The notes under the pieces were generated by a model, which was given only the letters and a program-made list of their open reading frames with translations, was not told the origin of the DNA and made no database searches. From the sequence record PP886230.1: DNA of 64,000 nt. One strand, 5' to 3'. The position numbers were made by a program, and so were the translations under genes. Shown here in pieces: positions 15,767-32,380 of the stretch. How positions within the stretch are numbered: position 1 is the first letter of the stretch; each line of letters starts with the position of its first letter.

Positions 15767-16351
15767 ATGCGTAATTATACTAAATTCATCCGTACACTGT
15801 CAGAAATGGAAACCAACAAAGAGATCCTTTCAGCTTGTCGGTTAGCTGGCCTGGAGATCATCGGTGCTGGTTCTTCCCGTATAGTATTCGCTTTAAATGA
15901 TCGGTTAGTGATTAAGGTCGCGAATTGTGATGCGGGTGTAGAACAAAATGAAACTGAATGTAAGGTATGGAATTTTTTAGACTATGACCGCCCTCAGTTG
16001 AAACAGTACTTTGCAAAGGTGCATATGCATTTATGCGATCCTGATAATATGTTTATCGTTATGGATCGGTTGAGTACTGCAAGCAAAGGCAGCGTAAAGC
16101 ACGTTAACGCGTGCAACGAATTAAAGTATAATATTAAACGTAATGCCATTGAACGCCAGCACCGCTTTGCTGATGCACTACAACACGTTGATGATACATT
16201 ATCAACACTAACGATAAGAGATATCAGAAAACAGAATATCGGCCAGGATCGTAATGGACTTATTAAAGTACTTGATTACGGTTTAACCCGCAATATCTGG
16301 AATCAGTACTATAAAAAGCGTGATGTAGAAGCAAGTAAGGTAACACGATAA
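15767..16351 (+). CDS. protein kinase-like (Ser/Thr kinase fold) protein
   Basis: IGAGSSRIVF (Gly loop), VIKVA (Lys), EQNETE (helix C), DIRKQNIG (catalytic loop), VLDYG (DFG-like). Confidence 0.8.
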   Translation: MRNYTKFIRTLSEMETNKEILSACRLAGLEIIGAGSSRIVFALNDRLVIKVANCDAGVEQNETECKVWNFLDYDRPQLKQYFAKVHMHLCDPDNMFIVMDRLSTASKGSVKHVNACNELKYNIKRNAIERQHRFADALQHVDDTLSTLTIRDIRKQNIGQDRNGLIKVLDYGLTRNIWNQYYKKRDVEASKVTR

Positions 16352-16403
16352 AAAAAGATTAAAAAAGGGATTGACTCCGGTCAGTCCCTTTGCTATTATA
16401 TAT

Positions 16404-16451
16404 TCATTGAGAGATAACTCACTGACCCATAGGGTGCGGAAGTGTATCTAT
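16404..16451 (+). ncRNA. CCC-ANN-GGGTG element
   Basis: motif 16426-16436; same hairpin-promoter upstream. Confidence 0.45.
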
Positions 16452-16573
16452 TATATAAGTATTCAGTACTGAAAACTATTTTTAAAAAGTACTTGCATTG
16501 TACTTAGAATCAAGTATAATGTTTTATATCGAGAGGGGAAATGGTTCTCCCTCAAAGAACAAGGAATAAAATC

Positions 16574-16795
16574 ATGACTACAATGACTTGCATTCACGCT
16601 TCAAACCTGCTTAATGATGCGGCCTTTAATGTTGAAACAGAATATCAATGTTATCGGGATGAAAATAAAAAAGTTTTTGTAGTTGATAATAATGGTTTCC
16701 ATATTGAATTGCAATCCGGCTTCACTGGCGTTGATGGTAAATCAGTATGGGGCGTACAGGATGATAAAGGCACATATCATTTTAAACGTAATTAA
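16574..16795 (+). CDS. hypothetical early protein
   Basis: promoter cassette; start moved from 16541. Confidence 0.8.
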   Translation: MTTMTCIHASNLLNDAAFNVETEYQCYRDENKKVFVVDNNGFHIELQSGFTGVDGKSVWGVQDDKGTYHFKRN

Positions 16796-16881
16796 GTATT
16801 GACAAAGTATATCAGTACTGTATAATAGTTTACATCAAGGGGAGAATAGTTCTCCCCACACCAATAAAAGGAAACATAATT

Positions 16882-17154
16882 ATGTCTAGCTACTCCGCTA
16901 CTATGATCATTAAAGATATGAACGGTAATCCTACTTCTGCTGGTGGATCATTTGGAAACATTAATTTAGATGGTCGGTTATCCATGCAATCAGCAATCGA
17001 TGCAGCGAAAGAAGTTTTTAAGAATGAATGTACTGTTAGTAAGCTGGATTATATGGGATTTGCTATCGAAAAAACTAATCGTTTTGTGGACTACAAAAAA
17101 CCACTGATGATTGATACTAACCTGAAAGCAAACGAAGTGGAGTACTTATTATGA
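16882..17154 (+). CDS. hypothetical early protein
   Basis: promoter cassette. Confidence 0.8.
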   Translation: MSSYSATMIIKDMNGNPTSAGGSFGNINLDGRLSMQSAIDAAKEVFKNECTVSKLDYMGFAIEKTNRFVDYKKPLMIDTNLKANEVEYLL

Positions 17155-17342
17155 CAGTTGAAGAAGTAAAAAAAGTACTGGCAGTACTACGCTATCATAA
17201 TCATTGTAAGGTGAAGAATGATCCTGATTATCTTGATTCATCCCTGGAAGAGGATACACTACAAGCAATAAGCCATATGCAAAAAATGCTTAAGCGTATG
17301 ACCGAAAAGAACAGGCCAGACTATATCGGAAATAAAATTTAA
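17151..17342 (+). CDS. hypothetical protein
   Basis: ATGA-coupled, GGAG RBS. Confidence 0.75.
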   Translation: MTVEEVKKVLAVLRYHNHCKVKNDPDYLDSSLEEDTLQAISHMQKMLKRMTEKNRPDYIGNKI

Positions 17343-17428
17343 AAAGTACTTGCATTGTAGTTAGATTAACGTATAATGTTTTACATAGAGCGGGGGAATA
17401 GTTCTCCCGCCAGTCCAGGAGATACACC

Positions 17429-17692
17429 ATGAACACTATCGAAATCACTATCAATGCACACGTATACGACAACGTAGTACTGCAAACTACTATGACCGCT
17501 AATGATACCAGTACTTTGCGGAATACTGTTATTAGTGCCGTATGTGCCGCTATCGGTGATGTCGCCCTGGAAAATGCAAAACACGTAAACGATGGTTTCA
17601 CTATGTGCAAACGTGATAACGCAAAACATATCATCGTGGAAGGTTACGGCGGTGTAGAATTTAATGTTTATATGAAAAAAGTACTTGCATAA
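17429..17692 (+). CDS. hypothetical early protein
   Basis: promoter cassette. Confidence 0.8.
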   Translation: MNTIEITINAHVYDNVVLQTTMTANDTSTLRNTVISAVCAAIGDVALENAKHVNDGFTMCKRDNAKHIIVEGYGGVEFNVYMKKVLA

Positions 17693-17759
17693 TAACTAAA
17701 ACAAAGTATAATGTTTTGCATAGGGGGAGATATCCTCCCCCACTAAAAGGAGTACTAAA

Positions 17760-17984
17760 ATGGCTAACTTTGATGAACTGATGCGGGAAGTAGCTAACCT
17801 GGCAGAAGAGAAGAAATCATTCGATTCTATCTATAACACCGCTCATCGTGATTCAGTACTGGCATGTAACCAGGATCAAAAAGATGAACTAATCGCCACC
17901 TATCATGAAGCATGGAAGTACTACCGACAATGGGAGAAAGAAGAAAGCGAGTCTACCATCAACGGCATCAATAATCTAATCTAA
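17760..17984 (+). CDS. hypothetical early protein
   Basis: promoter cassette. Confidence 0.8.
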   Translation: MANFDELMREVANLAEEKKSFDSIYNTAHRDSVLACNQDQKDELIATYHEAWKYYRQWEKEESESTINGINNLI

Positions 17985-18060
17985 AAGTTTTATTTCAGTA
18001 CTATTGACATAGCTTGATAGTACTGATGTAATAACTTTACTAACTACAAGGGGAAACATA

Positions 18061-18318
18061 ATGGAACAGTTCACACAATATCGGGTAAATCCTCAAGCTA
18101 TGGCCTACGTAGAAGACCATAAAACGTTACCAGTACTGCAACCAGTTAAAGGCCATATCTATCGTGCAATGTCGTGGTGTGCGGCCCAGGATGGCTATAA
18201 AACCGTAGCCGTGGGTATGTACTGCGGTAATGGTGAATGGTTTGATCCAAATAATCCGGTAGCCATTGACAGTACTGAAAAAATGAAATGGGCCGACTAC
18301 ATCGAAGATATTTCATAA
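18061..18318 (+). CDS. hypothetical protein
   Basis: promoter and RBS. Confidence 0.8.
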   Translation: MEQFTQYRVNPQAMAYVEDHKTLPVLQPVKGHIYRAMSWCAAQDGYKTVAVGMYCGNGEWFDPNNPVAIDSTEKMKWADYIEDIS

Positions 18319-18408
18319 AAACTATTTGACAGTACTAACCAGTAATGTATAATGTTTTACATAGAGCGGGGGAATAGTTCTCCCGCCAATAGTTTGGAGT
18401 TAAACATT

Positions 18409-18609
18409 ATGTCTATCGCTATCTCCCTGGTTGAAGTACTGAAAGAAGCTAAAGCCAACCAGATCGACGTAAAGATCCAGGAACTACAAAACGGCTTAAT
18501 CGGCTGTACTTGTACCGCTGGTGGAGCGGCAGACTATCGAGAACACGAATCACTCGAATCACTGGTTCGGTATCTTTCCATGATCGTTGATGATTGGAGA
18601 ATCATCTAA
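18409..18609 (+). CDS. hypothetical early protein
   Basis: promoter cassette; start moved from 18352. Confidence 0.75.
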   Translation: MSIAISLVEVLKEAKANQIDVKIQELQNGLIGCTCTAGGAADYREHESLESLVRYLSMIVDDWRII

Positions 18610-18662
18610 CAAAAAAGAATAAAAAAGGGATTGACTCCGGTCAGTCCCTTTGCTATTATATA

Positions 18663-18705
18663 CGCATAGACAAAAACTAGCCCACAGGGTGCATAGGTGT
18701 ATCCA
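18663..18705 (+). ncRNA. CCC-ANN-GGGTG element
   Basis: motif 18681-18691; same hairpin-promoter upstream. Confidence 0.45.
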
Positions 18706-18853
18706 AAATATATAGTTAATAACGGTGAGTAACTATCTGCTGGTGGAACTAAAACTATTAATAAAAAAGTATTGACAAAGTATATCAGTACTGCGATAAT
18801 GTATCTCGTAGGGCGGCAATGGTGCGACGGCCCACAAAGTTAGGAGATTCAAA

Positions 18854-19186
18854 ATGACTACTTCAATCGCTATCGTTAAAGCTTTCATCCGTACTAATGT
18901 TTCCTCTGTATTCATCGACGGCCTCGACCGTAACGTAGAATACTCAATCATTATCGCACAAACGGCAAACGGTTCTCGGTACATCCTGAATGATAGTGAA
19001 GCAAATCACTACTACTTCACTAAAGCCACTGGCTTTAAACGCATCGATGCTGATGTAGTATACGCTAAGATGAATAAGCTGGTAGATAAGATTAACGCTA
19101 AAGGTACTATAGATTTACAGTACTGGACCGAAACCGATCCAGAGTATGGATCTCACCGCTACCTGAATCCAGGTATCAAAATGTAA
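18854..19186 (+). CDS. hypothetical protein
   Basis: promoter and AGGAG RBS. Confidence 0.8.
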   Translation: MTTSIAIVKAFIRTNVSSVFIDGLDRNVEYSIIIAQTANGSRYILNDSEANHYYFTKATGFKRIDADVVYAKMNKLVDKINAKGTIDLQYWTETDPEYGSHRYLNPGIKM

Positions 19187-19275
19187 AAAGTACTTGCATA
19201 GTACTTAGATTCATGTATAATGTTTTACATAGAGAGGGGGAAATGGTTCTCCCTCCTAAATTAAGGAGTTTTATC

Positions 19276-19677
19276 ATGACCTTCTCAATCAATTCCTTCG
19301 CTGACGTTTTAGTACTGGCCCGGACTTTTGGTAAAGATGCACTGGAGTACGCTGTAAGTAATGGCACTATCCAACCGGAACAGTGCCGCATCATTGGAAA
19401 CTGCAAACGTTGGGCGGTATCCAATACTATTGCACTGGAAAACTTCCACGATGGCAACAATGAATATTCTGTTGATGTAGTATTCGAAGCCGTTGATCTC
19501 GGCGGTATCTATAATACTAACCTGAATGATGTGCGTATCGTTCGCACGGGGTTCGGTGCTTATGATGTATCTATCCGTGAAGCTATGAACACCGGATACA
19601 TTAGCAAGGACTTACTTGCTCACATCATGCAGCTGTGTACGGAACGTAACGAAGCACGTACTATCTTAGGGCTGTAA
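19276..19677 (+). CDS. hypothetical early protein
   Basis: promoter cassette; start moved from 19213. Confidence 0.8.
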   Translation: MTFSINSFADVLVLARTFGKDALEYAVSNGTIQPEQCRIIGNCKRWAVSNTIALENFHDGNNEYSVDVVFEAVDLGGIYNTNLNDVRIVRTGFGAYDVSIREAMNTGYISKDLLAHIMQLCTERNEARTILGL

Positions 19678-19745
19678 GCAATACACATCACCAAACATCA
19701 TAGGCCGCTCTCTAGCGGCCTTAACTATATCAGGAGTACATACAT

Positions 19746-19955
19746 ATGTTCTATACAGTATACAGCGTTCTAGGCACTATTGCAGGCGTACATGATAACG
19801 TCAATGATGCTATGCGTACAGTACTGCAACAGGTTCCACTAAAGCCTAAGACCATTAAGCAGATGACAGCACGACTAACCAGGGCGACGGCTGGCGTGGA
19901 AGTATGGCAGGACTATGGGGATACACAGATAATCGTAAGCGTAACGAAGGATTAA
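19746..19955 (+). CDS. hypothetical protein
   Basis: AGGAG RBS. Confidence 0.75.
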   Translation: MFYTVYSVLGTIAGVHDNVNDAMRTVLQQVPLKPKTIKQMTARLTRATAGVEVWQDYGDTQIIVSVTKD

Positions 19956-20146
19956 TGCGTAAAGGGATTTAGTACTGATTCAGAAAAAAGTCAAGGCGTT
20001 TTTAAAATTATGCGTTAAAAAAATGCATAGGTAATCCCTTGACTTTTTTGAAATAAAAGGGATTGGACTATGGCAAAATGCGTAGGGGGCTAAAGGGCGG
20101 GTAACCTTAGCGACTTCGATAAAGGGGTATTACGAATAAAATGTTA

Positions 20147-20174
20147 TTGATTTTTTATACGAATCGTATATTAT
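20147..20174 (+). promoter_or_regulatory. promoter upstream of the family A array
   Basis: TTGATT-16-TATTAT. Confidence 0.5.
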
Positions 20175-20204
20175 AGGATTGATATTATTTTTAATGGAGT
20201 CCCT

Positions 20205-20402
20205 ATGCGTATTTTAACTAAAGAACAGCACCACGAAAGACTTATCAATAACATGGCTATGATAATGTATAAGTCCCATGACCATGGTATTGCCTATAAG
20301 CGTGAATTAATTATGGCACTATTCATTGGAACTAACTTTCAGGAAAGGTATGTCAACGATTGGATTTGGTATTTAATTGAAGATATAACGAGTAAACTAT
20401 GA
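20205..20402 (+). CDS. family A paralog
   Basis: FIGTNFQE. Confidence 0.85.
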   Translation: MRILTKEQHHERLINNMAMIMYKSHDHGIAYKRELIMALFIGTNFQERYVNDWIWYLIEDITSKL

Positions 20403-20599
20403 AAATGCGTATTTTAAATAAAGAAGAATATCAATCACTGTTACGTAAAAACTTCACAAAGATTTATAATACAGACACACACGTAGAACGAATGGAGTTA
20501 TACCTTTTGATTACTTTGGGAACTAACTATCAGGAAAGATGGGTGATTCAATATATGGATACATTGAAAAATAAAATATTGTCCACGAGGAAACAATGA
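20399..20599 (+). CDS. family A paralog
   Basis: LGTNYQE. Confidence 0.85.
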   Translation: MKMRILNKEEYQSLLRKNFTKIYNTDTHVERMELYLLITLGTNYQERWVIQYMDTLKNKILSTRKQ

Positions 20600-20805
20600 A
20601 AACTATAACACGAACCCAATCATACGGTCTTATCTTGAAATACATGGACTTAATGGTGGATATCAGCAAAGACCTTCCTAAAACTGAAATTGAAGTTGCA
20701 AGAGCAGAGATCCGCATGTTGGCTGTACTGAACACAAACCATCAGGAAGAGTATGTTGACGATTGGATTCGATTTTTAATAGAAGATATTAAGAGTAAAC
20801 TATGA
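20596..20805 (+). CDS. family A paralog
   Basis: LNTNHQE. Confidence 0.85.
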   Translation: MKTITRTQSYGLILKYMDLMVDISKDLPKTEIEVARAEIRMLAVLNTNHQEEYVDDWIRFLIEDIKSKL

Positions 20806-21017
20806 TTATTATAGAAAACTCATATCAATATACTGAACGCATCGCTGCCAGACAACTTGAAATCCTCATAATATACGAAGAGACTTCTGATTTAAACTTA
20901 GCCGAGGTATTGGAAAATGATATACTATTGGGTGCATTCTTAGGAACAGACTATCAGAAGTATTATGAGGAAAAGTATTTGTCATCTCTTGAGAAATATA
21001 TCAGGAGCAAATTATGA
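20802..21017 (+). CDS. family A paralog
   Basis: LGTDYQK. Confidence 0.85.
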   Translation: MIIIENSYQYTERIAARQLEILIIYEETSDLNLAEVLENDILLGAFLGTDYQKYYEEKYLSSLEKYIRSKL

Positions 21018-21226
21018 TTTTTTTAACACCAGAAGAATATAAGAAACGTTTCAATTCCGCACAGGGTGAAATCTTACTTATATACCTTTCAAATGCAGAC
21101 CTTAACTTATCAAGGGTATTAGAAAAAGATTTACTTATGGGTGCATTCCTTGATACAGACTTTCAGGTGTATTATGTAGGGGAATACTTAATTGCACTTC
21201 AGAATTATATCAGGAGTAAACTATGA
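21014..21226 (+). CDS. family A paralog
   Basis: LDTDFQV. Confidence 0.85.
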   Translation: MIFLTPEEYKKRFNSAQGEILLIYLSNADLNLSRVLEKDLLMGAFLDTDFQVYYVGEYLIALQNYIRSKL

Positions 21227-21441
21227 AACATTTAAGTAATTACGAGAAGAATAAAATTATCGTTGCTGCAATAAACAAATATTTTACACTTCCTCACACA
21301 GAAGGTTTATGTGTAAGGGAACACAGGATAAACACCACCGATATACGCATGATGGCTGTACTGGGGACGAACTTTCAGGAAGAGTATGTTGTTGCACACA
21401 TAGTTGCCCTCACTGATCTAATAAGGGACAAATGTAAATGA
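21223..21441 (+). CDS. family A paralog
   Basis: LGTNFQE. Confidence 0.85.
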   Translation: MKHLSNYEKNKIIVAAINKYFTLPHTEGLCVREHRINTTDIRMMAVLGTNFQEEYVVAHIVALTDLIRDKCK

Positions 21442-21695
21442 AACACTTAACTGATGATGAATTTGAAACTATAATTCGTAAACTAACCCCCATCACAAGG
21501 ATAGTCTACGGTGACCCCAGCCTTACATGGAACCAAATGCGAGCTAAAGTTAATGAGCTATGGTTGCTGTACTTTATGGGGACTCAATATCAAGATAAGT
21601 TTTGCACAGAATATATCGAACAATTAACGAATGTTATACAGGATAAACTAGATGATTATTTGCTCACAAAACATGAAGACTTTATCAGGAGTTGA
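21438..21695 (+). CDS. family A paralog
   Basis: MGTQYQD. Confidence 0.85.
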   Translation: MKHLTDDEFETIIRKLTPITRIVYGDPSLTWNQMRAKVNELWLLYFMGTQYQDKFCTEYIEQLTNVIQDKLDDYLLTKHEDFIRS

Positions 21696-21924
21696 GTATC
21701 AAACTGCCCTATTCTCTTTAATCCATACCCTTAGAAAAAACAATGCCTTACATGGTGCACCTGAAGTGGATGTTATCAACGGTGAACTTTATCTTATGAA
21801 ATTCATTGGAACAAACTATCAAGATCTGTTCATTCAACGATACTTATCCGCATTAAGAAACCAAATCCAATATAAAACCATCAAGGCCAAAAAAGAATGG
21901 AATAAACAATGCGACAAAGACTAA
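21673..21924 (+). CDS. family A paralog
   Basis: IGTNYQD. Confidence 0.85.
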   Translation: MKTLSGVEYQTALFSLIHTLRKNNALHGAPEVDVINGELYLMKFIGTNYQDLFIQRYLSALRNQIQYKTIKAKKEWNKQCDKD

Positions 21925-22160
21925 ATCACAAAATGTATTGTAAACTATTGCAGACACTGGCACAGAAACACTATGACACTGTATCTGAAATATTACCCTA
22001 TGATATCATGCGTTTAATTCATAGTGAGGCAGAGATGCTTGTACTGATGACAGGCACTGATAAAAAAGCAATTGCCAAATCAATAGATATGTTCATCGAA
22101 GCACAATGTCAACACATTAGAACCGAGATATGGAGACGAGAGAATGATAACACTAAATGA
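21909..22160 (+). CDS. family A paralog (divergent)
   Basis: MTGTDKK. Confidence 0.75.
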   Translation: MRQRLNHKMYCKLLQTLAQKHYDTVSEILPYDIMRLIHSEAEMLVLMTGTDKKAIAKSIDMFIEAQCQHIRTEIWRRENDNTK

Positions 22161-22359
22161 GTTTCAGTATCATTGGAGGTTACAAACTATCAAATCAAAA
22201 GTGTATAGTATTGTGTTAAACAAATCTATTGCACAAGAGGACAAATGTGTTATAATAGCTGAAATGAAGTTGGGTGCTTTCGTAGGGACAAACTATCAAA
22301 ACATCTACACTGACGTATTGTTAAGTGCCTTACGTAACAAGGTGGTATCCAAAATATGA
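22144..22359 (+). CDS. family A paralog
   Basis: VGTNYQN. Confidence 0.85.
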   Translation: MITLNEFQYHWRLQTIKSKVYSIVLNKSIAQEDKCVIIAEMKLGAFVGTNYQNIYTDVLLSALRNKVVSKI

Positions 22360-22574
22360 GAAATTTACAAGGCTTTGAATACATCAGACTCCTGAAAACA
22401 TGCACCAGCAGAAGGAAAATCTTATCAAGCGATAAGAGCATCCAAGCTAACTTTAAGCACGCACTAGTAACTGAACTCTATGTAGGTGCACTCTTAGGCA
22501 CAAATTATCAACAAATGTATGTAGATCTATGGATTGACGCTCTACAGAAAGAGGTTAAAAGTAAATGCAAATGA
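22356..22574 (+). CDS. family A paralog
   Basis: LGTNYQQ. Confidence 0.85.
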   Translation: MRNLQGFEYIRLLKTCTSRRKILSSDKSIQANFKHALVTELYVGALLGTNYQQMYVDLWIDALQKEVKSKCK

Positions 22575-22783
22575 TTAATTTAAGTAAAGACGAATTTTAT
22601 GTTATACTGGCGAAAACTTATCCAGCACGTAAGGCCGTTTATGATAGTCACATTATTGAACCCTCAAAGAAGTTGATTTTAGTAAATGAGATAAAGATGC
22701 TTTCAGTCTTAGGAACAAACTATCAAGAGAATGCTGTACTGATGTTAATTGATGCCCTCCAGCGAGAGGTTAAACGTAAATGA
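22565..22783 (+). CDS. family A paralog
   Basis: LGTNYQE. Confidence 0.85.
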   Translation: MQMINLSKDEFYVILAKTYPARKAVYDSHIIEPSKKLILVNEIKMLSVLGTNYQENAVLMLIDALQREVKRK

Positions 22784-23010
22784 AAATGATTAATTTAACT
22801 TACCATGAATATCAAAAACGTTTAAATGCATCCAGAGATATAAGGATTCAAATATTCAATAACAAAAGATTGAAGCCTGATATCAGGAAAATCAAAATCA
22901 TAGAAGCCGTGTTGTGCAACTTCCTAGGGACTAACTATCAGGAAGGTAAGGTAGAAAACTATCTTATAGAACTCATGAATAGTATTGAAAATAAATGTAA
23001 GGGTAATTAA
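22780..23010 (+). CDS. family A paralog
   Basis: LGTNYQE. Confidence 0.85.
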   Translation: MKMINLTYHEYQKRLNASRDIRIQIFNNKRLKPDIRKIKIIEAVLCNFLGTNYQEGKVENYLIELMNSIENKCKGN

Positions 23011-23283
23011 CATGAAAATGATTAAATTATCTCAAGCAAAATATAAAGAACGCCTGGTAAAAATTGCACCTGGACTTAATGAAATCCATCACGGAGAAGT
23101 CATTAAACACGGAAATAAGATGATTATGAAACTTGAGTTAAAGGTGGGTGCATTCATAGGAACAAACTATCAGGAGTATTATGTAGATGAATACATAATC
23201 GCACTTAAGAGATACATTGGAAGAAAACTATATCTACAAACTAAAGAATAGTATTGAAAATAAATGTAAGGGTAATTAACATG
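22977..23283 (+). repeat. 38-bp direct repeat at family A gene junctions
   Basis: GAATAGTATTGAAAATAAATGTAAGGGTAATTAACATG at 22977-23014 and 23246-23283. Confidence 0.9.
23012..23251 (+). CDS. family A paralog
   Basis: IGTNYQE. Confidence 0.85.
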   Translation: MKMIKLSQAKYKERLVKIAPGLNEIHHGEVIKHGNKMIMKLELKVGAFIGTNYQEYYVDEYIIALKRYIGRKLYLQTKE

Positions 23284-23544
23284 CAAATGATCAATTTAAG
23301 TAAAGATGAATATACCGAGCGTATGACAAAAATTACGCACAAACGTAATACAATCTATCACAACCCAGAAATTCAACACAGTAAGAAAATGATTATGATG
23401 CGTGAGTTAAAGATGGGTGTATTCTTAGGAACAAACTATCAAGATACAGAAGTAAATCGCTTAATCGCGGAGTTACTACTGGAAATCAGAGGTAAGCTGT
23501 ACTTTCATCAAATGACCCAACCACTGAGGTGTACTAAGAAATGA
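23281..23544 (+). CDS. family A paralog
   Basis: LGTNYQD. Confidence 0.85.
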   Translation: MQMINLSKDEYTERMTKITHKRNTIYHNPEIQHSKKMIMMRELKMGVFLGTNYQDTEVNRLIAELLLEIRGKLYFHQMTQPLRCTKK

Positions 23545-23756
23545 TCAACATCACATTGCAAGAAAGATTCATCCGAATCAACTATGCAATTACCAAATTA
23601 GATGCTACTATAGGATTCCAAAGTCTACCATACAAAACCAGATTGTTATTAGAGTGTGAAGCTAAGTTGGGTGTACTATTAGGGACGCAACACCAACAAC
23701 GATATGTGGAAATCTGGATTGATCTTTTAACCCAGGATGTACATGAGAGAATGTAA
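23541..23756 (+). CDS. family A paralog
   Basis: LGTQHQQ. Confidence 0.85.
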   Translation: MINITLQERFIRINYAITKLDATIGFQSLPYKTRLLLECEAKLGVLLGTQHQQRYVEIWIDLLTQDVHERM

Positions 23757-24011
23757 ATGCAAAATGAAATGATATACTTAACCTATAATGAATACGTCGA
23801 GAGATTAGTTCGTGCCAAGAGATATACCAATAAACGTCCAATTGACCTAAACCAAACCCCTGCCGAAAGGAGTGCAGAAGTTTTATTCCAATCACTACCA
23901 TACCTTCTTGGAACTGATAGACAAGAGGAATATGTTGCACGTATGATTAGATATCTTAAAATCACTATTAAGGAAAAAGTAAATGCAAATGAAATACTTA
24001 ACAGACGATGA
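23757..24011 (+). CDS. family A paralog
   Basis: LGTDRQE. Confidence 0.85.
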   Translation: MQNEMIYLTYNEYVERLVRAKRYTNKRPIDLNQTPAERSAEVLFQSLPYLLGTDRQEEYVARMIRYLKITIKEKVNANEILNRR

Positions 24012-24234
24012 GTTAAAAGAACGACTAATTAAATCCAGAAAACTTACAAATCAACTTCCAAACGACACAAACAAGTCACATGCCGAAAGGAGTGCAGAAG
24101 TTTTATACATTCAACTCATGTACTTTCTTGGCACTGACAGACAAGAGTATTACATTGAAAGTATGCTTCGATATCTTAAATTCTCTATAAAGGAAAAGAT
24201 ACATGCTCAAGAATTTAAAAATCCTAACAGTTAA
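23983..24234 (+). CDS. family A paralog
   Basis: LGTDRQE; close to 23757. Confidence 0.85.
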   Translation: MQMKYLTDDELKERLIKSRKLTNQLPNDTNKSHAERSAEVLYIQLMYFLGTDRQEYYIESMLRYLKFSIKEKIHAQEFKNPNS

Positions 24235-24445
24235 TGAATATCATACGATTGTAATGAAAACTAATAGTGCAATTTCTAAAAAATCAAACCCAAAGTACAT
24301 ACTGGAACACACATTCGAAGAACGTCAATTAGCTTTAGTTGAAGCAAAACTTCTTGCACTCCTAGGAACAAACTATCAAGAAGAATACATCAGAAAACTA
24401 ATATACCTTTTAACTAAACATATAAGAAAAAGAAAAAATGCATGA
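24203..24445 (+). CDS. family A paralog
   Basis: LGTNYQE. Confidence 0.85.
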   Translation: MLKNLKILTVNEYHTIVMKTNSAISKKSNPKYILEHTFEERQLALVEAKLLALLGTNYQEEYIRKLIYLLTKHIRKRKNA

Positions 24446-24672
24446 AACACTTGACAGATGATGAACATGGGCTTATAGTAATGGATGTAATCAACATCGA
24501 ATACAAAAAGTTGATACGCTACCGTTGTTATGAAGATAAGCAACTCGTTCTAGCAGAACAGAAGTTGTTTCGACTCTTAAACACAAACTACCAAGCACAA
24601 TACGAAGAATCGTATATGTACCTTTTGGCGAGGAAAGCAAAAAGAGATTATGAAAATTTTAAGCGAAGGTGA
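24442..24672 (+). CDS. family A paralog
   Basis: LNTNYQA. Confidence 0.85.
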   Translation: MKHLTDDEHGLIVMDVINIEYKKLIRYRCYEDKQLVLAEQKLFRLLNTNYQAQYEESYMYLLARKAKRDYENFKRR

Positions 24673-24865
24673 TTCAGTAATATTACTTATAGAGAATGCA
24701 AGTAAATTCTTAAACATAACACTGTCTGATATAGATGATGATGACAAAGAAGTACTTAGAGCCGATTTAAGAGTTCTTTTATATGTTGGAACTAACTTAC
24801 AAGAGCAATACATTGAGGACTACATCAATGAACTTAAAGAATCAGTACTGAGAAAATGCAAATGA
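24650..24865 (+). CDS. family A paralog
   Basis: VGTNLQE. Confidence 0.85.
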   Translation: MKILSEGDSVILLIENASKFLNITLSDIDDDDKEVLRADLRVLLYVGTNLQEQYIEDYINELKESVLRKCK

Positions 24866-25095
24866 AAATCATTACAGAAGAAGAATACCTAACAATCATA
24901 AATGGACTGTTTTTGAAGTTATTTGCCATTAACACATCAAAACTACCAGATACTGATAAAATCATTAAGTTAAATGAAATCTACGTTCAAGCTACTCTAG
25001 GAACTAACTATCAAGAAGCCAATGTGTATAATTACATTAATACACTCAAAAGGGTAATACAATTAAAATGCACAAACATATACACAAACCCCTAG
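24856..25095 (+). CDS. family A paralog
   Basis: LGTNYQE. Confidence 0.85.
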   Translation: MQMKIITEEEYLTIINGLFLKLFAINTSKLPDTDKIIKLNEIYVQATLGTNYQEANVYNYINTLKRVIQLKCTNIYTNP

Positions 25096-25295
25096 GAACA
25101 GCAGAATACATTGAACTCATGGGATTACACTTCTCATCCTTTAAGAAACTGATGCAAGAATCAAATAATGATTTAGAATATCACATCAAAAGTTCAGATT
25201 TAAGATTGCTACTCACTCTAGGAACAGATTCCCAAGAGCGATTTGTCAATGAGCATATTAGAGCACTTTTAAATGGCATCAGGAATAAACTATGA
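25068..25295 (+). CDS. family A paralog
   Basis: LGTDSQE. Confidence 0.85.
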   Translation: MHKHIHKPLGTAEYIELMGLHFSSFKKLMQESNNDLEYHIKSSDLRLLLTLGTDSQERFVNEHIRALLNGIRNKL

Positions 25296-25507
25296 AGGAA
25301 ATATCAAATCAAGAGTACTTGGCACTATTCAGGAAGAATAATCACAAATATATGGCACTTGATTCAAGAACTGATATAAGTGAACTTGAAAAAAATCTTT
25401 TGCGTTCAGATATGATAGTACTGACACTCTTAGGAACACAGCATCAAGAGAGAACTGTTAATTCACACATAGGGATTCTTATGCAGATAGTACAGGAAAA
25501 GATATGA
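25292..25507 (+). CDS. family A paralog
   Basis: LGTQHQE. Confidence 0.85.
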   Translation: MKEISNQEYLALFRKNNHKYMALDSRTDISELEKNLLRSDMIVLTLLGTQHQERTVNSHIGILMQIVQEKI

Positions 25508-25725
25508 TAATCATAACACAACAAGATATTCTTAAGTTCACAAGGGTTCATGCATCTGAATTTGATGCTATATTATCAAAAAGTTACAACAACCCTTATA
25601 CACAAGATGTACATTACAGTGAATTATGGATGTATATACTTTTAGGTACAAATAAACAAGAGCAAGCAGTACAGAAGTATTTGACAGCTTTACGTGATGC
25701 TACTGCTAATGGAGTACATGTTTAA
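25504..25725 (+). CDS. family A paralog
   Basis: LGTNKQE. Confidence 0.85.
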   Translation: MIIITQQDILKFTRVHASEFDAILSKSYNNPYTQDVHYSELWMYILLGTNKQEQAVQKYLTALRDATANGVHV

Positions 25726-25726
25726 T

Positions 25727-25969
25727 ATGAAAGTACTGACAGAACTAGAAATGTATCATAGATTTAATAAGTACTATCATTTACTTAAGCCTATACAGAG
25801 GATTAAATGTCCATTTGAAGAGAAACAGGTTTTAATCTATGAGCACAAGTTCTTTGTATCATTAGGTACAGATCAACAAGAGTACTATTTGACGTTGTAC
25901 TTGATTACATTAATAGATTTAATTCACTATAAAACAAAACAAGCTAATAAAGAGAAATATGAAAACTAA
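25727..25969 (+). CDS. family A paralog
   Basis: LGTDQQE. Confidence 0.85.
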   Translation: MKVLTELEMYHRFNKYYHLLKPIQRIKCPFEEKQVLIYEHKFFVSLGTDQQEYYLTLYLITLIDLIHYKTKQANKEKYEN

Positions 25970-26303
25970 TATACAACTCAAGGTATATAAATCATTTGAA
26001 CATACATATATCAAAAGTAGTCTATGTAGAGATGTAATGGATTACAAGGGTAAGCCATTCACAATTACCTATGATTCTTATGTTAGTGATTTATATATAT
26101 CATTTGTTAATTACGAAAATAAAATATACAAGCACGTTGATATTAAAGATTTAAGTACTTTATCTGAAGAGGAATACTTTCAGGAATCATTAGTATGGGA
26201 TTTAGAGTTTCCTATGCCATTAGTACATAAGATGATAGTACTAATGAAAGAATCTAAACAGGAGCCTAATGGTGATTATGAAGAACACACAGTTGAGTAT
26301 TAA
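25959..26303 (+). CDS. family B paralog
   Basis: EEEYFQESLVWD. Confidence 0.85.
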   Translation: MKTNIQLKVYKSFEHTYIKSSLCRDVMDYKGKPFTITYDSYVSDLYISFVNYENKIYKHVDIKDLSTLSEEEYFQESLVWDLEFPMPLVHKMIVLMKESKQEPNGDYEEHTVEY

Positions 26304-26673
26304 AAGTACTGATAATATTAAGAGTTATACAAGCTCAAGTACTGTGACAATCGAAGTGAATTCTCTTAATGCTGGTAATACAGTAGATAAGTTCTTTATT
26401 GCTCAAGGGTACAGGAAAGATATTCATCAATATTGTTCAGTATATGGGGAGTACAATAGTACTGAAGATATAATTTATTGGTCAACACATCAAGATTATC
26501 TAACTAAAATTGGCGTTCCAGATGTTAGTACTTTATCTGAAGAAGAATACTTTCAGTACAGCTTAGTACATGATTTACCTATACCTTTAGGGTTAATCAA
26601 GGGTATACAGGAAGAGGTTCATAAGCTTAAATCCATGAGTAAAGGTACTTTCATTAGAACAGTGCAATACTAG
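26269..26673 (+). CDS. family B paralog
   Basis: EEEYFQYSLVHD. Confidence 0.85.
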   Translation: MVIMKNTQLSIKSTDNIKSYTSSSTVTIEVNSLNAGNTVDKFFIAQGYRKDIHQYCSVYGEYNSTEDIIYWSTHQDYLTKIGVPDVSTLSEEEYFQYSLVHDLPIPLGLIKGIQEEVHKLKSMSKGTFIRTVQY

Positions 26674-26674
26674 C

Positions 26675-26703
26675 TTGACAGTACTTTTCATTACTGATAT
26701 AGT
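26675..26703 (+). promoter_or_regulatory. sigma70 promoter
   Basis: TTGACA-17-TATAGT. Confidence 0.7.
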
Positions 26704-26732
26704 ACACTAACGTTAATCATAGGGTAAAAATT

Positions 26733-26978
26733 ATGTTAAATTTTTTAAATTTTCTTATCGTCTTGTGTATTGTTCTTGGGATTGCACCATTTGTATTGTA
26801 TTTCATGGATTCAGATGAAATGCAGAAGATGAATTGCACAAGGACAGGACAGAGTAGAGTAGAGACGATTCTTATGCCTGTTACGGTTATTGTTAACAAC
26901 ATGCCCATTACGAACATGGTCCCTACCCTAACGACAACGTACCAGTACTCTTGTACAGACGGAGAGAGGTGGAGATGA
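26733..26978 (+). CDS. single-pass membrane protein
   Basis: N-terminal hydrophobic FLIVLCIVLGIAPFVLYF. Confidence 0.75.
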   Translation: MLNFLNFLIVLCIVLGIAPFVLYFMDSDEMQKMNCTRTGQSRVETILMPVTVIVNNMPITNMVPTLTTTYQYSCTDGERWR

Positions 26979-27295
26979 AATTTAATATAGCAAAAACATC
27001 GAGTATATGTATTTTTGGTTATGCAGAAGAGTTAGGTGATATTGACATTCTTTTGTACAAAAAGGATGGTGTTATGCATTTCAAGTACCAGGATGAAGAG
27101 GCAGACAATTATCTTTTACCTAATTTAGTACAAATGCAGGAAGAGGAATTATTCCAGTACAGCTTAATATACGACATTGATATTTGCACGATGCCAGTAC
27201 TAATTAGTATTCAAAAAGTGATGCTCGATATGTATGATAAGCTAATACAAGGTACATCAGGGAGAATCATTGAAATCGATATACAAGACAATTAA
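26975..27295 (+). CDS. family B paralog
   Basis: EEELFQYSLIYD. Confidence 0.85.
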   Translation: MKFNIAKTSSICIFGYAEELGDIDILLYKKDGVMHFKYQDEEADNYLLPNLVQMQEEELFQYSLIYDIDICTMPVLISIQKVMLDMYDKLIQGTSGRIIEIDIQDN

Positions 27296-27488
27296 TCAAG
27301 AATGGAAGACCCAAAAGTACAGGGAATTCAACAGGAATTTTACAAAAGATGCATTGAATTTAAAAACAACAGAGTTTGATATGTTTATTTTTCTTGGAAC
27401 ACGTTCACAAGAACAATTTGTTCATTATTATATAAATTCGTTGCGAACGGAGATAGTATGCAAAACACAGGGTATTATAAAAAGGTAA
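27270..27488 (+). CDS. family A paralog
   Basis: FLGTRSQE. Confidence 0.8.
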   Translation: MKSIYKTINQEWKTQKYREFNRNFTKDALNLKTTEFDMFIFLGTRSQEQFVHYYINSLRTEIVCKTQGIIKR

Positions 27489-27724
27489 ACCAATATTTGT
27501 ACGCTACAAAGTACAGGGATTTTTGTTTAAAGGGTGGTGATGAAGATTTTTCTTTGCGATTATCAGAATTTAATCTGTTATTTTATCTTGGTACAAAAGA
27601 ACAAGAAGAAATGGCACAGAAATTTATCAAGCACCTTGTACAAAAAATTAATATGCAAATTTTGATGCTTAAGATACAGAATGAGATAAATGAATATGAA
27701 TCCAGAAATAGTTCAGGATCTTAA
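27458..27724 (+). CDS. family A paralog
   Basis: YLGTKEQE. Confidence 0.8.
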   Translation: MQNTGYYKKVNQYLYATKYRDFCLKGGDEDFSLRLSEFNLLFYLGTKEQEEMAQKFIKHLVQKINMQILMLKIQNEINEYESRNSSGS

Positions 27725-28082
27725 AAAAGTAATATTTCTTTTGAATACCAGAAGTGAATTGTATACAGAGTTAAAAGAGATTAATGCATTTTATCAGAAT
27801 TTTGTAATCCAAGAGATCAGTGATTTAATTACAGATGCATTATTTGAATTATCGGAGAAATACAAAGGTTCAGAGTTCAGTGTTAAGAATGTTATTCGTC
27901 CAAGTGCAAGGAAAATTATATTATCACATTTTACATTTGACAATAAAGATTTATTCAGTCATAATCCAAGTACAGCTTTATATTTTATTCCTGATTCAGA
28001 CAAAAATCATCCTATTCATTACGGATGGATTTTGTCATATATAGTACAAGGAAAGGAGTATCCTATTAAATGGAAAGATTAG
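27690..28082 (+). CDS. hypothetical protein
   Basis: coupled in array. Confidence 0.75.
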   Translation: MNMNPEIVQDLKKVIFLLNTRSELYTELKEINAFYQNFVIQEISDLITDALFELSEKYKGSEFSVKNVIRPSARKIILSHFTFDNKDLFSHNPSTALYFIPDSDKNHPIHYGWILSYIVQGKEYPIKWKD

Positions 28083-28231
28083 GGCGATTAGATTATTACA
28101 CAATTAATACAAATTATTTGTTGCGTAATATAAAATCCGATTACAAAATATGGATAAAGAACAGAGATAGCATGTGTTATGAATTTTATTTAGATTATGC
28201 TATCAAACGATTTTTAAGAGAAGAACATTAA
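28070..28231 (+). CDS. small hypothetical protein (53 aa)
   Basis: AAGGAG RBS; TAATG-coupled; below track cutoff. Confidence 0.6.
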   Translation: MERLGRLDYYTINTNYLLRNIKSDYKIWIKNRDSMCYEFYLDYAIKRFLREEH

Positions 28232-28434
28232 TGCAAAAGATTAATACGATAACATTAAATGCATTACAGGATTCATTATTAGATAGTATTAAGATGTATT
28301 ACAATATACATTTGAAGGGTGGTATTGATAATTACGATTATTATTTGAGTTTAATTACATTTGAGCACCTTTCAGTACAGGACAGGATTTTACATCCTAC
28401 AAATCCTAGGTATCCATCGATAGGTAAATTATGA
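28231..28434 (+). CDS. hypothetical protein
   Basis: coupled in array. Confidence 0.7.
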   Translation: MQKINTITLNALQDSLLDSIKMYYNIHLKGGIDNYDYYLSLITFEHLSVQDRILHPTNPRYPSIGKL

Positions 28435-28979
28435 ATGAGATAGAGTTATTAGCACACAAGATAAGTACAATAATGCTTATCCTCAATAACAACCATCCTA
28501 TATCGCATATAGATGGAATCCTGAGTCAGAGGACAGGTGGTAGTTTATATTTGTCCATAAACGCAGATATCGCAAGGAAATACATTGATATCGATGTTGA
28601 AATCGAATATGATACAACGGGGATTGTTGATGTAGGTGCATTAATCAGTTCAAATCCAGTATCAGCATCCCCATTGACCAAAGATGTTAGTACAGGATTC
28701 GAAGGATATTTGTGGTACAATACCAATGATGATTATTTTATATATCAGCATTCCAATACAAATTATGATGAAGACAAATTTCAGTTCATAGACCCTTATG
28801 ATGAAGCTGGCGTATTCCAACAATCATTAATCACAAAACCGCATGAGATGATGTATCTAATGTTATTCAGTACAATGCATTTGAATTCATTAATTAAAGG
28901 TTTAAAATTTTATATTCAATTAAATTTAGTCCATGTAGTTTATGATTTATTAATGCAAGGATATAGTTATGAAGTATAA
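28431..28979 (+). CDS. family B paralog
   Basis: EAGVFQQSLIT. Confidence 0.8.
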   Translation: MNEIELLAHKISTIMLILNNNHPISHIDGILSQRTGGSLYLSINADIARKYIDIDVEIEYDTTGIVDVGALISSNPVSASPLTKDVSTGFEGYLWYNTNDDYFIYQHSNTNYDEDKFQFIDPYDEAGVFQQSLITKPHEMMYLMLFSTMHLNSLIKGLKFYIQLNLVHVVYDLLMQGYSYEV

Positions 28980-29280
28980 AATGATGTATACCCCAGATAT
29001 GATTTATGTTGAATTAGAAGATGATGACGATGGGTGGAATTTGATTTATTCAAGAAGTTCAGGTTGGTACATGGCACATTTAAATGATTCGATAGTTACA
29101 GATTATTTTGTAGATTTCAATACATTATCCGATGAAGAATTGTTCCAACAGCAATTAGTGATTGACACGGGTGGTTATGATGTCTTATTATTAAAAAAGA
29201 TACAGAAAGCTGTTATTGATTTTAAGCCCATGATATGGCAAAGGAAATATTATGACCTCGAAGTACCGTACCAGCAATGA
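28969..29280 (+). CDS. family B paralog
   Basis: DEELFQQQLVID. Confidence 0.85.
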   Translation: MKYKMMYTPDMIYVELEDDDDGWNLIYSRSSGWYMAHLNDSIVTDYFVDFNTLSDEELFQQQLVIDTGGYDVLLLKKIQKAVIDFKPMIWQRKYYDLEVPYQQ

Positions 29281-29818
29281 AATTCAGTACACCTACGCTA
29301 ATGCAATCCTTATGGGACAAAAGTTAGCTTGTATTGTTGCAGCCTTATATAATGCCCAGAAATATCACAAGCGTCATTTCCACAAATGTATTGGTATTAT
29401 TCCATCGAAGTACAATACATATATTGTGTGCACGAGTCATTTTGATAAACGATTCAATACACCTGATACCCCAAATTCCCGTAGTGTTATTGGTCTTTTA
29501 GATTTCGCCCCTGGTGCTGTTATTGGAAAGAATGATTTAGAGTACGCATGGTATAATAAAAATTCCCCATTAGTAATGGTAACATATGATAAAGAAACGA
29601 ACAAAACAATAGAGTACAATACATATAAATCAGAGGAAGAATTTTTCCAAGGTTCATTGCTTGTACCAGTGCGTTTATTGTTTTATAATGTCATAATGAG
29701 TACAGTACACAATAGTCCATTACACAAGAATCACAAAATTAATTTCAATTTTTGTGCTTATGCGATTGATGGTGTATATGAGTGTTTAATGGAGGTATTG
29801 AGTTATGAAGCTGAATAA
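29252..29818 (+). CDS. family B paralog
   Basis: EEEFFQGSLL. Confidence 0.8.
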   Translation: MTSKYRTSNEIQYTYANAILMGQKLACIVAALYNAQKYHKRHFHKCIGIIPSKYNTYIVCTSHFDKRFNTPDTPNSRSVIGLLDFAPGAVIGKNDLEYAWYNKNSPLVMVTYDKETNKTIEYNTYKSEEEFFQGSLLVPVRLLFYNVIMSTVHNSPLHKNHKINFNFCAYAIDGVYECLMEVLSYEAE

Positions 29819-30146
29819 TACATTTGATATTAATAAGTTAAGAGAATGGTTTTATAGTATTGAAATTGAAGCCATCCCGTATCATAGATATGAACAATAT
29901 AATTTAACCAGTATTGATATCAGTGAGTTGTACGCGTATTATCAAAGTGCATTAGAGATGCATAAGTTATTTTTGAGTACAGATTTTGTTCTAAATTACA
30001 ATTTTGAGGAATTTAATAATTATAATTTAGTACAGAAATATGTAGTAGCAAAGTACATGTACCTTCAAGGAATTACAAGTATAGTGGAATTCAATACAGT
30101 CCTTGCTTTAGTTGAGGTAATTTTATGCAGTACATGTATGATTTAG
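29805..30146 (+). CDS. hypothetical protein
   Basis: coupled in array. Confidence 0.75.
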   Translation: MKLNNTFDINKLREWFYSIEIEAIPYHRYEQYNLTSIDISELYAYYQSALEMHKLFLSTDFVLNYNFEEFNNYNLVQKYVVAKYMYLQGITSIVEFNTVLALVEVILCSTCMI

Positions 30147-30631
30147 AGTTCAGCTTAGATGCTGCATTTAAATATGTTCACAAGATAGAAACAATATACA
30201 GTACATTATGTGCAATAAAATCAGTAACAGAAGAGCTTGATGTTGGTGAAAGGTATCAGGTGTGGAATAATTCATTTTTTAATAAAGAACATTCTGCGAC
30301 GGTATTTTATATTTTAGCATTTAATCCCAGCAATTGTTACCCAGAGAAGCATGAACGTTATCCAAATGACGACATGTGGTTTGAGTACAAAGAAGATGCT
30401 GATATGTCGTCAATTGAAGTTCCTGATGATTTTAATGCACAAGATTTAACAGAAGAGTGGTGGTTCCAGCAGAATTTAGTACATGATGATATTGATTTAT
30501 TTTTCTATATTGCATTTAAAATGCTTTATCACAACAATATAGTTAAAGAAAGTGTATCGTTTTCATGTCTATATATTGATGATTTGTACAATGAAATTCA
30601 AATAAACATGCCCAGAACGCCTGTATCGTAA
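30125..30631 (+). CDS. family B paralog
   Basis: EEWWFQQNLVHD. Confidence 0.85.
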   Translation: MQYMYDLEFSLDAAFKYVHKIETIYSTLCAIKSVTEELDVGERYQVWNNSFFNKEHSATVFYILAFNPSNCYPEKHERYPNDDMWFEYKEDADMSSIEVPDDFNAQDLTEEWWFQQNLVHDDIDLFFYIAFKMLYHNNIVKESVSFSCLYIDDLYNEIQINMPRTPVS

Positions 30632-30657
30632 GATATGGGCTTTTTTTCGTTTTGGTA

Positions 30658-30686
30658 TTGACATAGAAGACCAAAGCTGTTATCAT
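30658..30686 (+). promoter_or_regulatory. sigma70 promoter
   Basis: TTGACA-17-TATCAT. Confidence 0.7.
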
Positions 30687-31763: not shown

Positions 31764-31764
31764 T

Positions 31765-32379: not shown

Positions 32380-32380
32380 T

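Follow-up and report, generated by a model that had tools for sequence, protein, structure and literature searches.

We explored a stretch of 64,000 nucleotides (the window) that corresponds to bases 1-64000 of Escherichia phage vB_EcoM_E9.1 (PP886230.1, 367,851 bp; 100% identity by megablast), an Asteriusvirus of the PBECO4/121Q/phAPEC6-like ('Rak2-like') jumbo myovirus type. Between positions 20205 and 25969 this window contains 26 contiguous plus-strand open reading frames (ORFs) of 65-96 aa, taken as longest ORFs, which we term family A and which are all annotated as hypothetical proteins in PP886230.1. A preliminary description made from the sequence alone had claimed 26 consecutive small paralogs at this location and four dispersed copies starting at 27270, 27458, 39785 and 39981, and both claims are confirmed. 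Specifically, a hidden Markov model (HMM) built from the 26 array members recovers all 26 and then the four dispersed copies (E 4e-12 to 4e-5), while the best non-family ORF in six frames scores E 0.3. Because a model built from these 26 sequences is circular for the same 26, each was also scored by a leave-one-out (LOO) model from which it had been omitted, and 25 of the 26 scored at E <= 2e-10 with only the ninth member, m09, being marginal (E 0.1). A scan of E9.1 covering 1-112 kb and 330-368 kb found no family-A copies in 64-112 kb, where recognizable enzymes start, or in 330-368 kb. As developed below, the soluble, non-virion proteins of family A share one compact four-helix scaffold and are encoded by an old multigene family that is restricted to Asteriusvirus.

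The array, which lies entirely on the plus strand, begins with m01 (65 aa, 20205-20402; LOO E 1.1e-14), m02 (66 aa, 20399-20599; 4.4e-15), m03 (69 aa, 20596-20805; 7.1e-17), the acidic m04 (71 aa, isoelectric point (pI) 4.45, 20802-21017; 2.2e-14), m05 (70 aa, 56% identical to m04, 21014-21226; 1.3e-16), m06 (72 aa, 21223-21441; 1.3e-17), m07 (85 aa, 21438-21695; 3.3e-19) and m08 (83 aa, 21673-21924, with the longest ORF starting at 21652; 9.4e-13). After m09 (83 aa, 21909-22160) there follow m10 (71 aa, 22144-22359; 1.7e-17), m11 (72 aa, 22356-22574; 1.1e-20), which is the member that was modelled, m12 (72 aa, 22565-22783; 2e-19), m13 (76 aa, 22780-23010; 3.2e-19), m14 (79 aa, 23012-23251, with the longest ORF using a TTG at 22985; 1.8e-22), m15 (87 aa, 23281-23544; 3.5e-21), m16 (71 aa, 23541-23756; 7.9e-15), m17 (84 aa, 54% identical to m18, 23757-24011; 7e-14) and m18 (83 aa, 23983-24234; 8.9e-19). 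The remainder is made up of m19 (80 aa, 24203-24445; 2.4e-16), m20 (76 aa, 24442-24672; 2.3e-10), the acidic m21 (71 aa, pI 4.44, 24650-24865; 2.5e-17), m22 (79 aa, 24856-25095; 3.6e-19), m23 (75 aa, 25068-25295; 1.2e-14), m24 (71 aa, 25292-25507; 2.7e-15), m25 (73 aa, 25504-25725; 2.5e-12) and m26 (83 aa, 25718-25969, with the longest ORF using a GTG at 25694; 1.7e-12). The dispersed members, also on the plus strand, are m27 (72 aa, TTG start, 27270-27488; HMM E 2.7e-9), m28 (88 aa, 27458-27724; 1.1e-5), m29 (72 aa, 39785-40003; 4.2e-5) and m30 (63 aa, 39981-40172; 3.9e-12). GenBank shortens three of these (annotated as 27381-27488, 39821-40003 and 40038-40172), and the HMM alignment favors the longer ORFs, including the TTG start at 27270. 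Member m29 is 94% identical to the database cluster P0076, which matches the family at 3e-10.

The family is recognized by a turn motif of the form G-T-(N/D)-x-Q-E that had been claimed for every member. The array contains 26 matches to this motif compared with 0.29 expected from shuffled sequences, and the T is invariant across the 26; the claim is too strong for the other positions, as 23/26 members have the G and 25/26 the Q. The exceptions are m03 and m20, which have N for G (LNT), m05, which has D for G (LDT), and m09, which has K for Q (TGTDKK), while the dispersed m29 reads VGSNKQ with S in place of T. The outlier m09 also has two small indels relative to the family. It is conserved in 12 relatives with an ortholog dN/dS ratio (omega) of 0.25, and when a profile of its orthologs was compared by hhalign with the other 25 members it aligned in register (P 0.009). 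Thus, to judge from its sequence, m09 is probably a very divergent family member. Translational coupling, which had also been proposed, is well supported by the gene junctions, 22 of 25 of which overlap (12 of them as ATGA) with a largest gap of 29 nt, and by Shine-Dalgarno-like motifs upstream of 26 of the 28 starts. Part of the '...RSKL' that recurs at C termini arises from dual coding, with the same bases also specifying the Shine-Dalgarno sequence and start of the next gene (AGGAGTAAACTATGA).

The array is located directly beside the left end of the unique genome. Bases 1-20107 are 100% identical over 20,107 bp to PP886230.1 347745-367851 and therefore constitute the left direct terminal repeat (DTR), so that the first array gene begins 98 bp beyond the DTR end. 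A similar layout is seen in the relative vB_Ec-M-J, where the DTR is annotated as 1-21525 and the first array gene starts at 21624, and a DTR of ~21 kb has been demonstrated in the relative fEgEco12 by PhageTerm and restriction digests (PMC13070987). The G+C content changes from 0.37-0.42 within the DTR to 0.31-0.34 past it. Alignment of 11 phages further revealed a nearly invariant 24-nt plus-strand block, GGGCGGGTAACCTTAGCGACTTCG, at 20093-20116 across the DTR end, which is identical in all 11 except for its first two bases and which in the divergent phage Turkey5 reads GTGCGGG.... This block may be a terminus-recognition sequence or part of the signal that generates the terminus.

A predicted sigma70-type promoter (TTGATT-N16-TATTAT, plus strand, 20147-20174) is situated 40-70 nt beyond the GGGCGGGTAACCTTAGCGACTTCG block. 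The preliminary description had regarded this site as the only visible promoter of the array. As a motif it is not outstanding, given a consensus match of 9/12 and the fact that promoter-like sites are not enriched in the sequence (72 found versus 75.6 expected from shuffles), but what does support it is its conservation in relatives. Specifically, the site reads TTGACT-N17-TAAAAT in close relatives, which is nearer to consensus than the E9.1 copy, and in Turkey5 a TG-extended -10 is retained despite diverged flanks. With the number of sites at shuffle expectation, internal promoter-like sites were set aside; the one at 24451 (11/12), for example, is produced by the codons of a conserved N-terminal 'LTD'. 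The first intergenic gap of at least 45 nt after the array (26674-26732) occurs only past two genes of a second family (family B), and it contains the next sigma70-like promoter (TTGACA-N17-TATAGT, TG-extended, plus strand, 26675-26703, 11/12 match). Thus, the transcription unit is likely composed of the 20147 promoter, 26 family-A genes and two family-B genes. In the Salmonella phage SD-15_S21 (L015, ~3960-4000) a segment of ~75 bp that includes the array promoter and the Shine-Dalgarno sequence of the first gene is missing. Compared with its relatives, this phage also has a record that is shorter by ~25-40 kb, and the gap could be a true deletion or an assembly artefact.

The presence of a conserved sigma70-type promoter just past the left DTR suggests that the whole panel is probably made together by the host RNA polymerase early in infection. 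This is congruent with the DTR genes of the distant relative PA5oct belonging to the early class (PMC7318152), and with a similar suspicion that the authors who described phage CBB voiced for its genes near the repeat (PMC5259590). The literature searched contained no transcriptome of an Asteriusvirus, and early expression is therefore something that we infer.

We analyzed the protein fold with an AlphaFold2 model of m11 that used the 30 paralogs as its alignment. The model is very confident, with a predicted local distance difference test (pLDDT) score of 97.2 and a predicted template modelling (pTM) score of 0.81, and consists of helices at residues 6-14, 17-25, 31-45 and 52-71 with a one-residue beta-bridge joining residue 2 to the invariant T49. 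Conservation is concentrated in the hydrophobic core, in an L-(T/S)-x-x-E-Y cap at the N terminus and in the G-T-(N/D)-x-Q-E turn that joins helices 3 and 4 (H3, H4). In contrast, paralogs differ almost at random in helices 1 and 2 (H1, H2), in the loop at 26-30 and on those faces of H3 and H4 that point outward. As the conserved columns are those of core, cap and turn, the turn motif in this model reads as a structural clasp rather than a catalytic site. The earlier proposal of a conserved scaffold with a variable surface agrees with this pattern and with the diversified charge of the family.

No relative of this fold was detected outside of the family. Foldseek searches with the model against the PDB, AFDB clusters and BFVD returned only family members (TM scores 0.7-0.9) with all remaining matches at E > 0.1 (best E against the PDB, 2.2), VIA-align against 48,161 PDB representatives gave a best Z of 6.8, which is inside its stated noise for helical proteins, and searching the ESM Atlas by shape and by features returned only family members and added nothing. 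At the sequence level, an HMM search of PDB sequences gave E > 1, and in Pfam, NCBIfam and PADLOC no match reached the gathering score, with only scattered single-member chance matches. A resemblance to the podovirus adaptor or tail-tubular-A protein (T7 gp11 type) was considered (Foldseek probability 0.3-0.6 over ~45 residues; VIA-align Z 5.2-5.7), but these values fall below the stated noise for helical proteins and the candidate was rejected as generic helix packing. No transmembrane segment was found in family A. The statement in the preliminary description that no known domain or catalytic motif could be recognized is therefore borne out by sequence and fold searches, and the structure comparison that it had recommended uncovered no housekeeping or structural fold.

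The charge of these proteins raises the question of whether they are small nucleic-acid binders, such as regulators of transcription or translation, or nucleoid-associated proteins that act on phage or host DNA or RNA. The flanks had been described as basic, which is true of many members (pI > 8 in 17 of 30) and is accompanied by C-terminal tails that are often K/R-rich, by K70 in 20 of 26 members and by a common R12. There is also a jumbo-phage precedent in the ~35-copy zinc-ribbon expansion of Bacillus phage G, for which such a role has been proposed on no more than general grounds (Iyer et al. 2021, PMC7824862). The description does not extend to the whole family, however, because pI ranges from 4.4 to 9.9 with five members being acidic (pI 4.4-5.3, thus below 6) and several neutral. 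No helix-turn-helix, ribbon-helix-helix or zinc-ribbon fold or motif was found with Pfam, Foldseek or VIA-align, and the conservation of the C-terminal 'RSKL' is partly a consequence of dual coding. We thus consider a general role in nucleic-acid binding to be unlikely, although a portion of the evidence does point to it.

The family itself already has a catalogue entry, PHROG 4148, and its genes carry the annotation hypothetical in 36 genomes. Nine of 10 tested members match this entry with E values of 7e-9 to 4e-24, covering positions 1-72 of the 74-position profile (m01, E 1e-19; m07, 9e-21; m27, 7e-9; m30, 1e-16), the exception being m09 which has no match to it, and most array genes of phage SHEFM2K are labelled phrog 4148. 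These full-length matches indicate that PHROG 4148, together with the fragment family PHROG 28039, is the same family as family A. The entry has no function assigned and comes without a structure, a description of the array or an evolutionary analysis, and our literature searches found nothing specific on the family, its array, its fold or evolution, or on tandem paralog arrays in phages. By tblastn the family is present in 36 of 50,697 phage records, comprising 32 Escherichia and four Salmonella phages, all of 310-386 kb. An exhaustive profile search of 1.84 billion representative proteins yielded 96 clusters, all of short proteins except for one 269-aa fusion, with the divergent ones belonging to other coliphages of the Asteriusvirus type (Turkey5, JNE01) or to metagenomic contigs of this type. 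No cellular homologs were seen; the matches labelled 'E. coli' are located on ~350-kb contigs that are as large as these phage genomes. The fusion protein (P0184; L003-L005, 8001-8810) is present in a few relatives at a position matching ~26.7 kb of the window and consists of a family-A domain followed by a 204-aa C-terminal part, for which there was no Pfam or PHROG match and no homolog among 5.8 billion proteins or in the window.

A further question is whether the proteins could be internal to the virion, as part of a capsid inner body or as ejected proteins. Inner-body proteins of other jumbo phages are paralogous, as the family-A proteins are. The virion of phAPEC6, which has 94% identical DNA and in which the family genes are gp462c and gp467c-489c, contains an inner-body rod of undefined composition (PMC7247149). 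These gene products are nevertheless absent from the consulted part of the table of 62 virion proteins, which passes straight from gp347 to gp549, and the same proteome did detect a protein as small as 4.7 kDa, gp315c (PMC7247149). In addition, the array promoter is of the sigma70 type and not of a late type. A location inside of the virion is thus highly improbable.

Fourteen phages or assemblies were then used to compare the array region. The UNVERIFIED record of phage CMSTMSU (MH494197.1; L009) was left out of all ortholog, evolutionary and dN/dS counts; in this record 20 of 33 family matches are fragments, which suggests many frameshift errors. Across the compared phages there are 21-31 family members per region, and ~22 of the 26 E9.1 members are present in the same order in 12-14 of the 14 arrays. 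About eight accessory members have been gained or lost, m12, m14, m16 and m19 are sometimes missing, and m04 and m05 swap order. Within each genome the highest identity between any two paralogs is only 48-63%, and accessory members share only 29-56% identity with the paralog closest to them. The only DNA-level repeat reported by Tandem Repeats Finder is that of m14 and m15 (269 bp, 77%), which makes these the youngest duplicate pair, and m14 is variably present among relatives and 100% identical in 18 phage records. With paralogs no more than 63% identical and only one such repeat, the differences in copy number are indicative of loss or exchange of old paralogs and not of fresh duplication.

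Selection was quantitated as pooled pairwise Nei-Gojobori (NG86) comparisons of E9.1 with 12 relatives, a design with a single reference in which the comparisons are not phylogenetically independent. Ortholog omega is 0.35 when pooled and 0.12-0.80 per gene (highest in m25), and it is thus below 1 for every gene; 20 flanking non-family genes used as a control gave 0.23. By region the most constrained segment is the GT turn (0.12), followed by H3 (0.30), H4 (0.32), H1 (0.42), the loop (0.46), H2 (0.50) and the tails, where a value of 0.88 is inflated because reading frames overlap, such that no region exceeds 0.9. Even in columns where the entropy between paralogs exceeds 3 bits, omega within ortholog sets is 0.42-0.53. 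This indicates that the private surface of each paralog is conserved, which is the signature of subfunctionalized, non-redundant genes.

These results also address whether the ORFs are decaying duplicates, filler or otherwise spurious. Other than the lack of an assigned function and their uniform annotation as hypothetical there is little to recommend this explanation, as the ORFs are intact and order-conserved in 14 arrays, are under purifying selection, are preceded by Shine-Dalgarno-like motifs and share a very confident fold. The selection data refute it, and we consider it to be exceedingly improbable.

The preliminary description had further interpreted the array as an arms-race accordion, in which recent tandem duplication expands and contracts the array under positive selection against variable host proteins. 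Several features do fit this model, namely the tandem arrangement itself, a copy number that differs between phages, the existence of accessory members, the 269-bp repeat of m14 and m15, and a family omega that exceeds that of the flanking genes. Nevertheless, no paralog pair exceeds 63% identity in any of the 14 arrays, gene order is largely kept, and omega is below 1 in every gene and structural region with no positive selection detected, although pairwise pooled NG86 estimates are insensitive to a few selected sites. An accordion is thus largely refuted at the sampled timescale, and we now regard it as very unlikely. The same description had named an array that is invariant and under uniform purifying selection as the pattern that would contradict it. 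Selection is indeed purifying throughout, but the array is not invariant given its accessory members and the repertoire of the Turkey5/JNE01 lineage. We conclude that the array is an old, stable, individually maintained and subfunctionalized repertoire that was not recently amplified.

An almost wholly different repertoire is observed in the Turkey5/JNE01 lineage and in a metagenomic relative. Turkey5 has 21 members that are roughly collinear with those of E9.1 and only 35-74% identical to them. A comparison of E9.1 with Turkey5 over window positions 15767-33993 places an abrupt mosaic boundary at the DTR end, with the proteins at the end of the DTR being 92-100% identical and all genes to the right of the boundary being 25-74% identical. 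Because all genes past the DTR show this drop, the divergence is that of the whole post-DTR module and not of family A alone.

Family B provides the immediate context of the array. The gap-free unit is closed by two plus-strand genes of this family (114 and 134 aa, 25959-26673; PHROG 13866 and family-B HMM) that overlap the array end and each other by -11 and -35 nt. By HMM, family B has ~35 members of 104-193 aa that fill much of 25.9-52 kb (25959-52438), and they share the core motif EE-x-[YF]-FQ-x-S-x-[VI]-[YFW]-D, the likeness of which to a potyviral-protease-type site is probably due to chance. An AlphaFold2 model of family B is alpha/beta (pLDDT 86) and has no fold match, and a remote homology between families A and B was rejected (hhalign probability 0.2%). 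The gene map reads A x26, B, B |., B, A, A ... B x12, A, A, B ..., with the two families interleaved.

This organization could be taken to mean that the family-A proteins form one intracellular assembly in which they are used together stoichiometrically, or that they operate with family B as pairs of adaptor and effector, inhibitor and effector, or chaperone and client. Translational coupling would favor matched production, both dispersed A pairs are located among B genes, and both families occur only at 20-52 kb. However, a common interface would need surface conservation that the A paralogs do not show, 30 A genes face ~35 B genes with most A genes not being beside a B gene, and neither homology between the families nor a known fold suggests a partnership. 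We therefore view an assembly or a two-family system as an unlikely explanation. A more elaborate proposal is that the 30 A and ~35 B genes constitute a germline-encoded, combinatorial repertoire of ~65 genes, or ~1/10 of the phage genes, that is made in one batch at the start of infection. Family-A proteins would then be specificity modules, either inhibitors or adaptors, that each recognize a different strain-variable host factor such as a defence effector or abortive infection (Abi) toxin, with some of them paired with B, and would form the phage equivalent of an innate 'receptor panel' behind the broad host range of these jumbo phages. This we offer as speculation with a low chance of being correct.

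The explanation that we favor is that family A is a panel of small binding modules, each with a different partner, that is made early and serves host take-over or counter-defence, and we assign to it a probability of roughly 0.4. According to this model, the 26 A genes and two B genes would be read as one coupled unit from the promoter past the left DTR, with the host RNA polymerase presumably producing the whole panel early in infection. The conserved core, cap and turn, with the turn pinned to residue 2, would form the shared scaffold, and the rest of the surface, including net charge, would be specific to each paralog. Each member would then act as a small binding module, either an inhibitor or an adaptor, and the macromolecular partner in the infected cell would differ from member to member. 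Purifying selection on each private surface indicates that the copies are not redundant, and in variable hosts the panel as a whole may serve for take-over or counter-defence. Change in the repertoire would be slow, through loss, swapping or modular replacement of old, diverged members; no bursts of duplication were seen.

There are several observations that weigh against this panel model. An omega below 1 throughout, with no positively selected region in the orthologs, is unlike what is usual for an active arms race, and the divergence of Turkey5 is regional and not specific to family A. The context provides no functional anchor because the co-operonic family B is itself an orphan fold, and the orphan partner of the natural fusion gives no functional hint either. 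We found no link between family A and a known anti-defence or take-over protein. The anatomy of the array, family membership, phylogenetic range, predicted fold, selection regime and conservation of the promoter sequence are shown directly, while early expression, binding function and host targets are features that we infer.

Comparison with known systems places the array in a broader setting. Like the zinc ribbon of phage G, family A involves dozens of small-domain paralogs in one jumbo-phage genome, but it differs in being an orphan four-helix bundle of mixed charge that is encoded in one coupled operon at a DTR boundary. The MGF110, MGF360 and MGF505 multigene families of African swine fever virus (ASFV), the terminal host-range families of poxviruses and the poxvirus K3L accordion are thought to deal with host variation. 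Family A resembles the ASFV and poxvirus terminal families in that paralogs are clustered by terminal repeats with a strain-variable repertoire, yet there is no homology, and an array without recent amplification or positive selection does not follow the K3L type of accordion. SPO1 gp37-60, the T4 early 'monkey-wrench' genes and the T5 pre-early terminal-repeat genes are early host-takeover modules. These modules, as well as the early DTR genes of PA5oct (PMC7318152), are similar to the array in encoding small non-structural proteins of orphan fold near a genome end with host-type promoters. These modules are nonetheless mostly composed of unrelated genes, often with a promoter for each, while the array represents one family 26 times in a single operon. 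The colicin DNase immunity proteins Im2, Im7, Im8 and Im9 are four-helix inhibitors of ~85 aa in which the hot-spot helix is conserved and the specificity helix varies. Their size, all-helical build and combination of a conserved scaffold with variable specificity surfaces are reminiscent of family A, which is an analogy only, as there is no sequence or fold match (Foldseek, VIA-align) and no cognate toxin genes are nearby: the neighbors of array genes are other array genes, and neither Pfam nor PHROGs identified a toxin or nuclease domain in the flanking genes. Overall, the array is another case of the terminal-region multigene families of viruses and of the lineage-specific expansions of jumbo phages, and it stands out by its scale, operon architecture and orphan fold.

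Most jumbo-phage genes have no assigned function, and why large paralog families are kept is an open question for which this array, with 30 copies of an orphan fold that are each conserved with a private surface, is an unusually clean case. It also replaces the first reading of an accordion in motion with that of an old, stable and subfunctionalized repertoire. The genus is of practical relevance as members of Asteriusvirus are under development against pathogenic E. coli and Salmonella. If family-A members inhibit distinct host factors, then they would provide a new small scaffold for protein inhibitors and a ready-made panel for discovering defence or take-over targets. Should they instead bind nucleic acid or form an assembly, this would likewise be new biology, given a fold without known relatives.

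Several additional features of the region were observed. The DTR holds four perfect 12/12 sigma70 consensus promoters at 14224, 14655, 16799 and 18326, and a 28-nt hairpin, AAAGGGATTGACTCCGGTCAGTCCCTTT, occurs twice in it (16364-16391 and 18624-18651) with an embedded TTGACT -35. This raises the question of whether hairpin and -35 may form a terminator-promoter cassette. Motifs of the type AAAGGGATT, which are related to AAAGGGATTGACTCCGGTCAGTCCCTTT, are seen again upstream of the array. The window gave no matches in Rfam and tRNA scans. Five ORFs of 88-103 aa make up a third tandem family at 60822-62231 of the window, and there are also two-member paralog pairs, for example 28431/29252, 32584/42000 and 33379/45828. 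Immediately to the left of the right DTR, PP886230.1 342680-347471 contains ~22 tandem ORFs of ~60 aa; as they do not match the family-A HMM, they were rejected as members of family A. Next to these, on the minus strand at 329687-342576, there are eleven tandem paralogs annotated as 'regulator of chromosome condensation' (RCC1-like), and the two 'DNA condensation proteins' gp549 and gp551 listed in the phAPEC6 virion table may be their counterparts.

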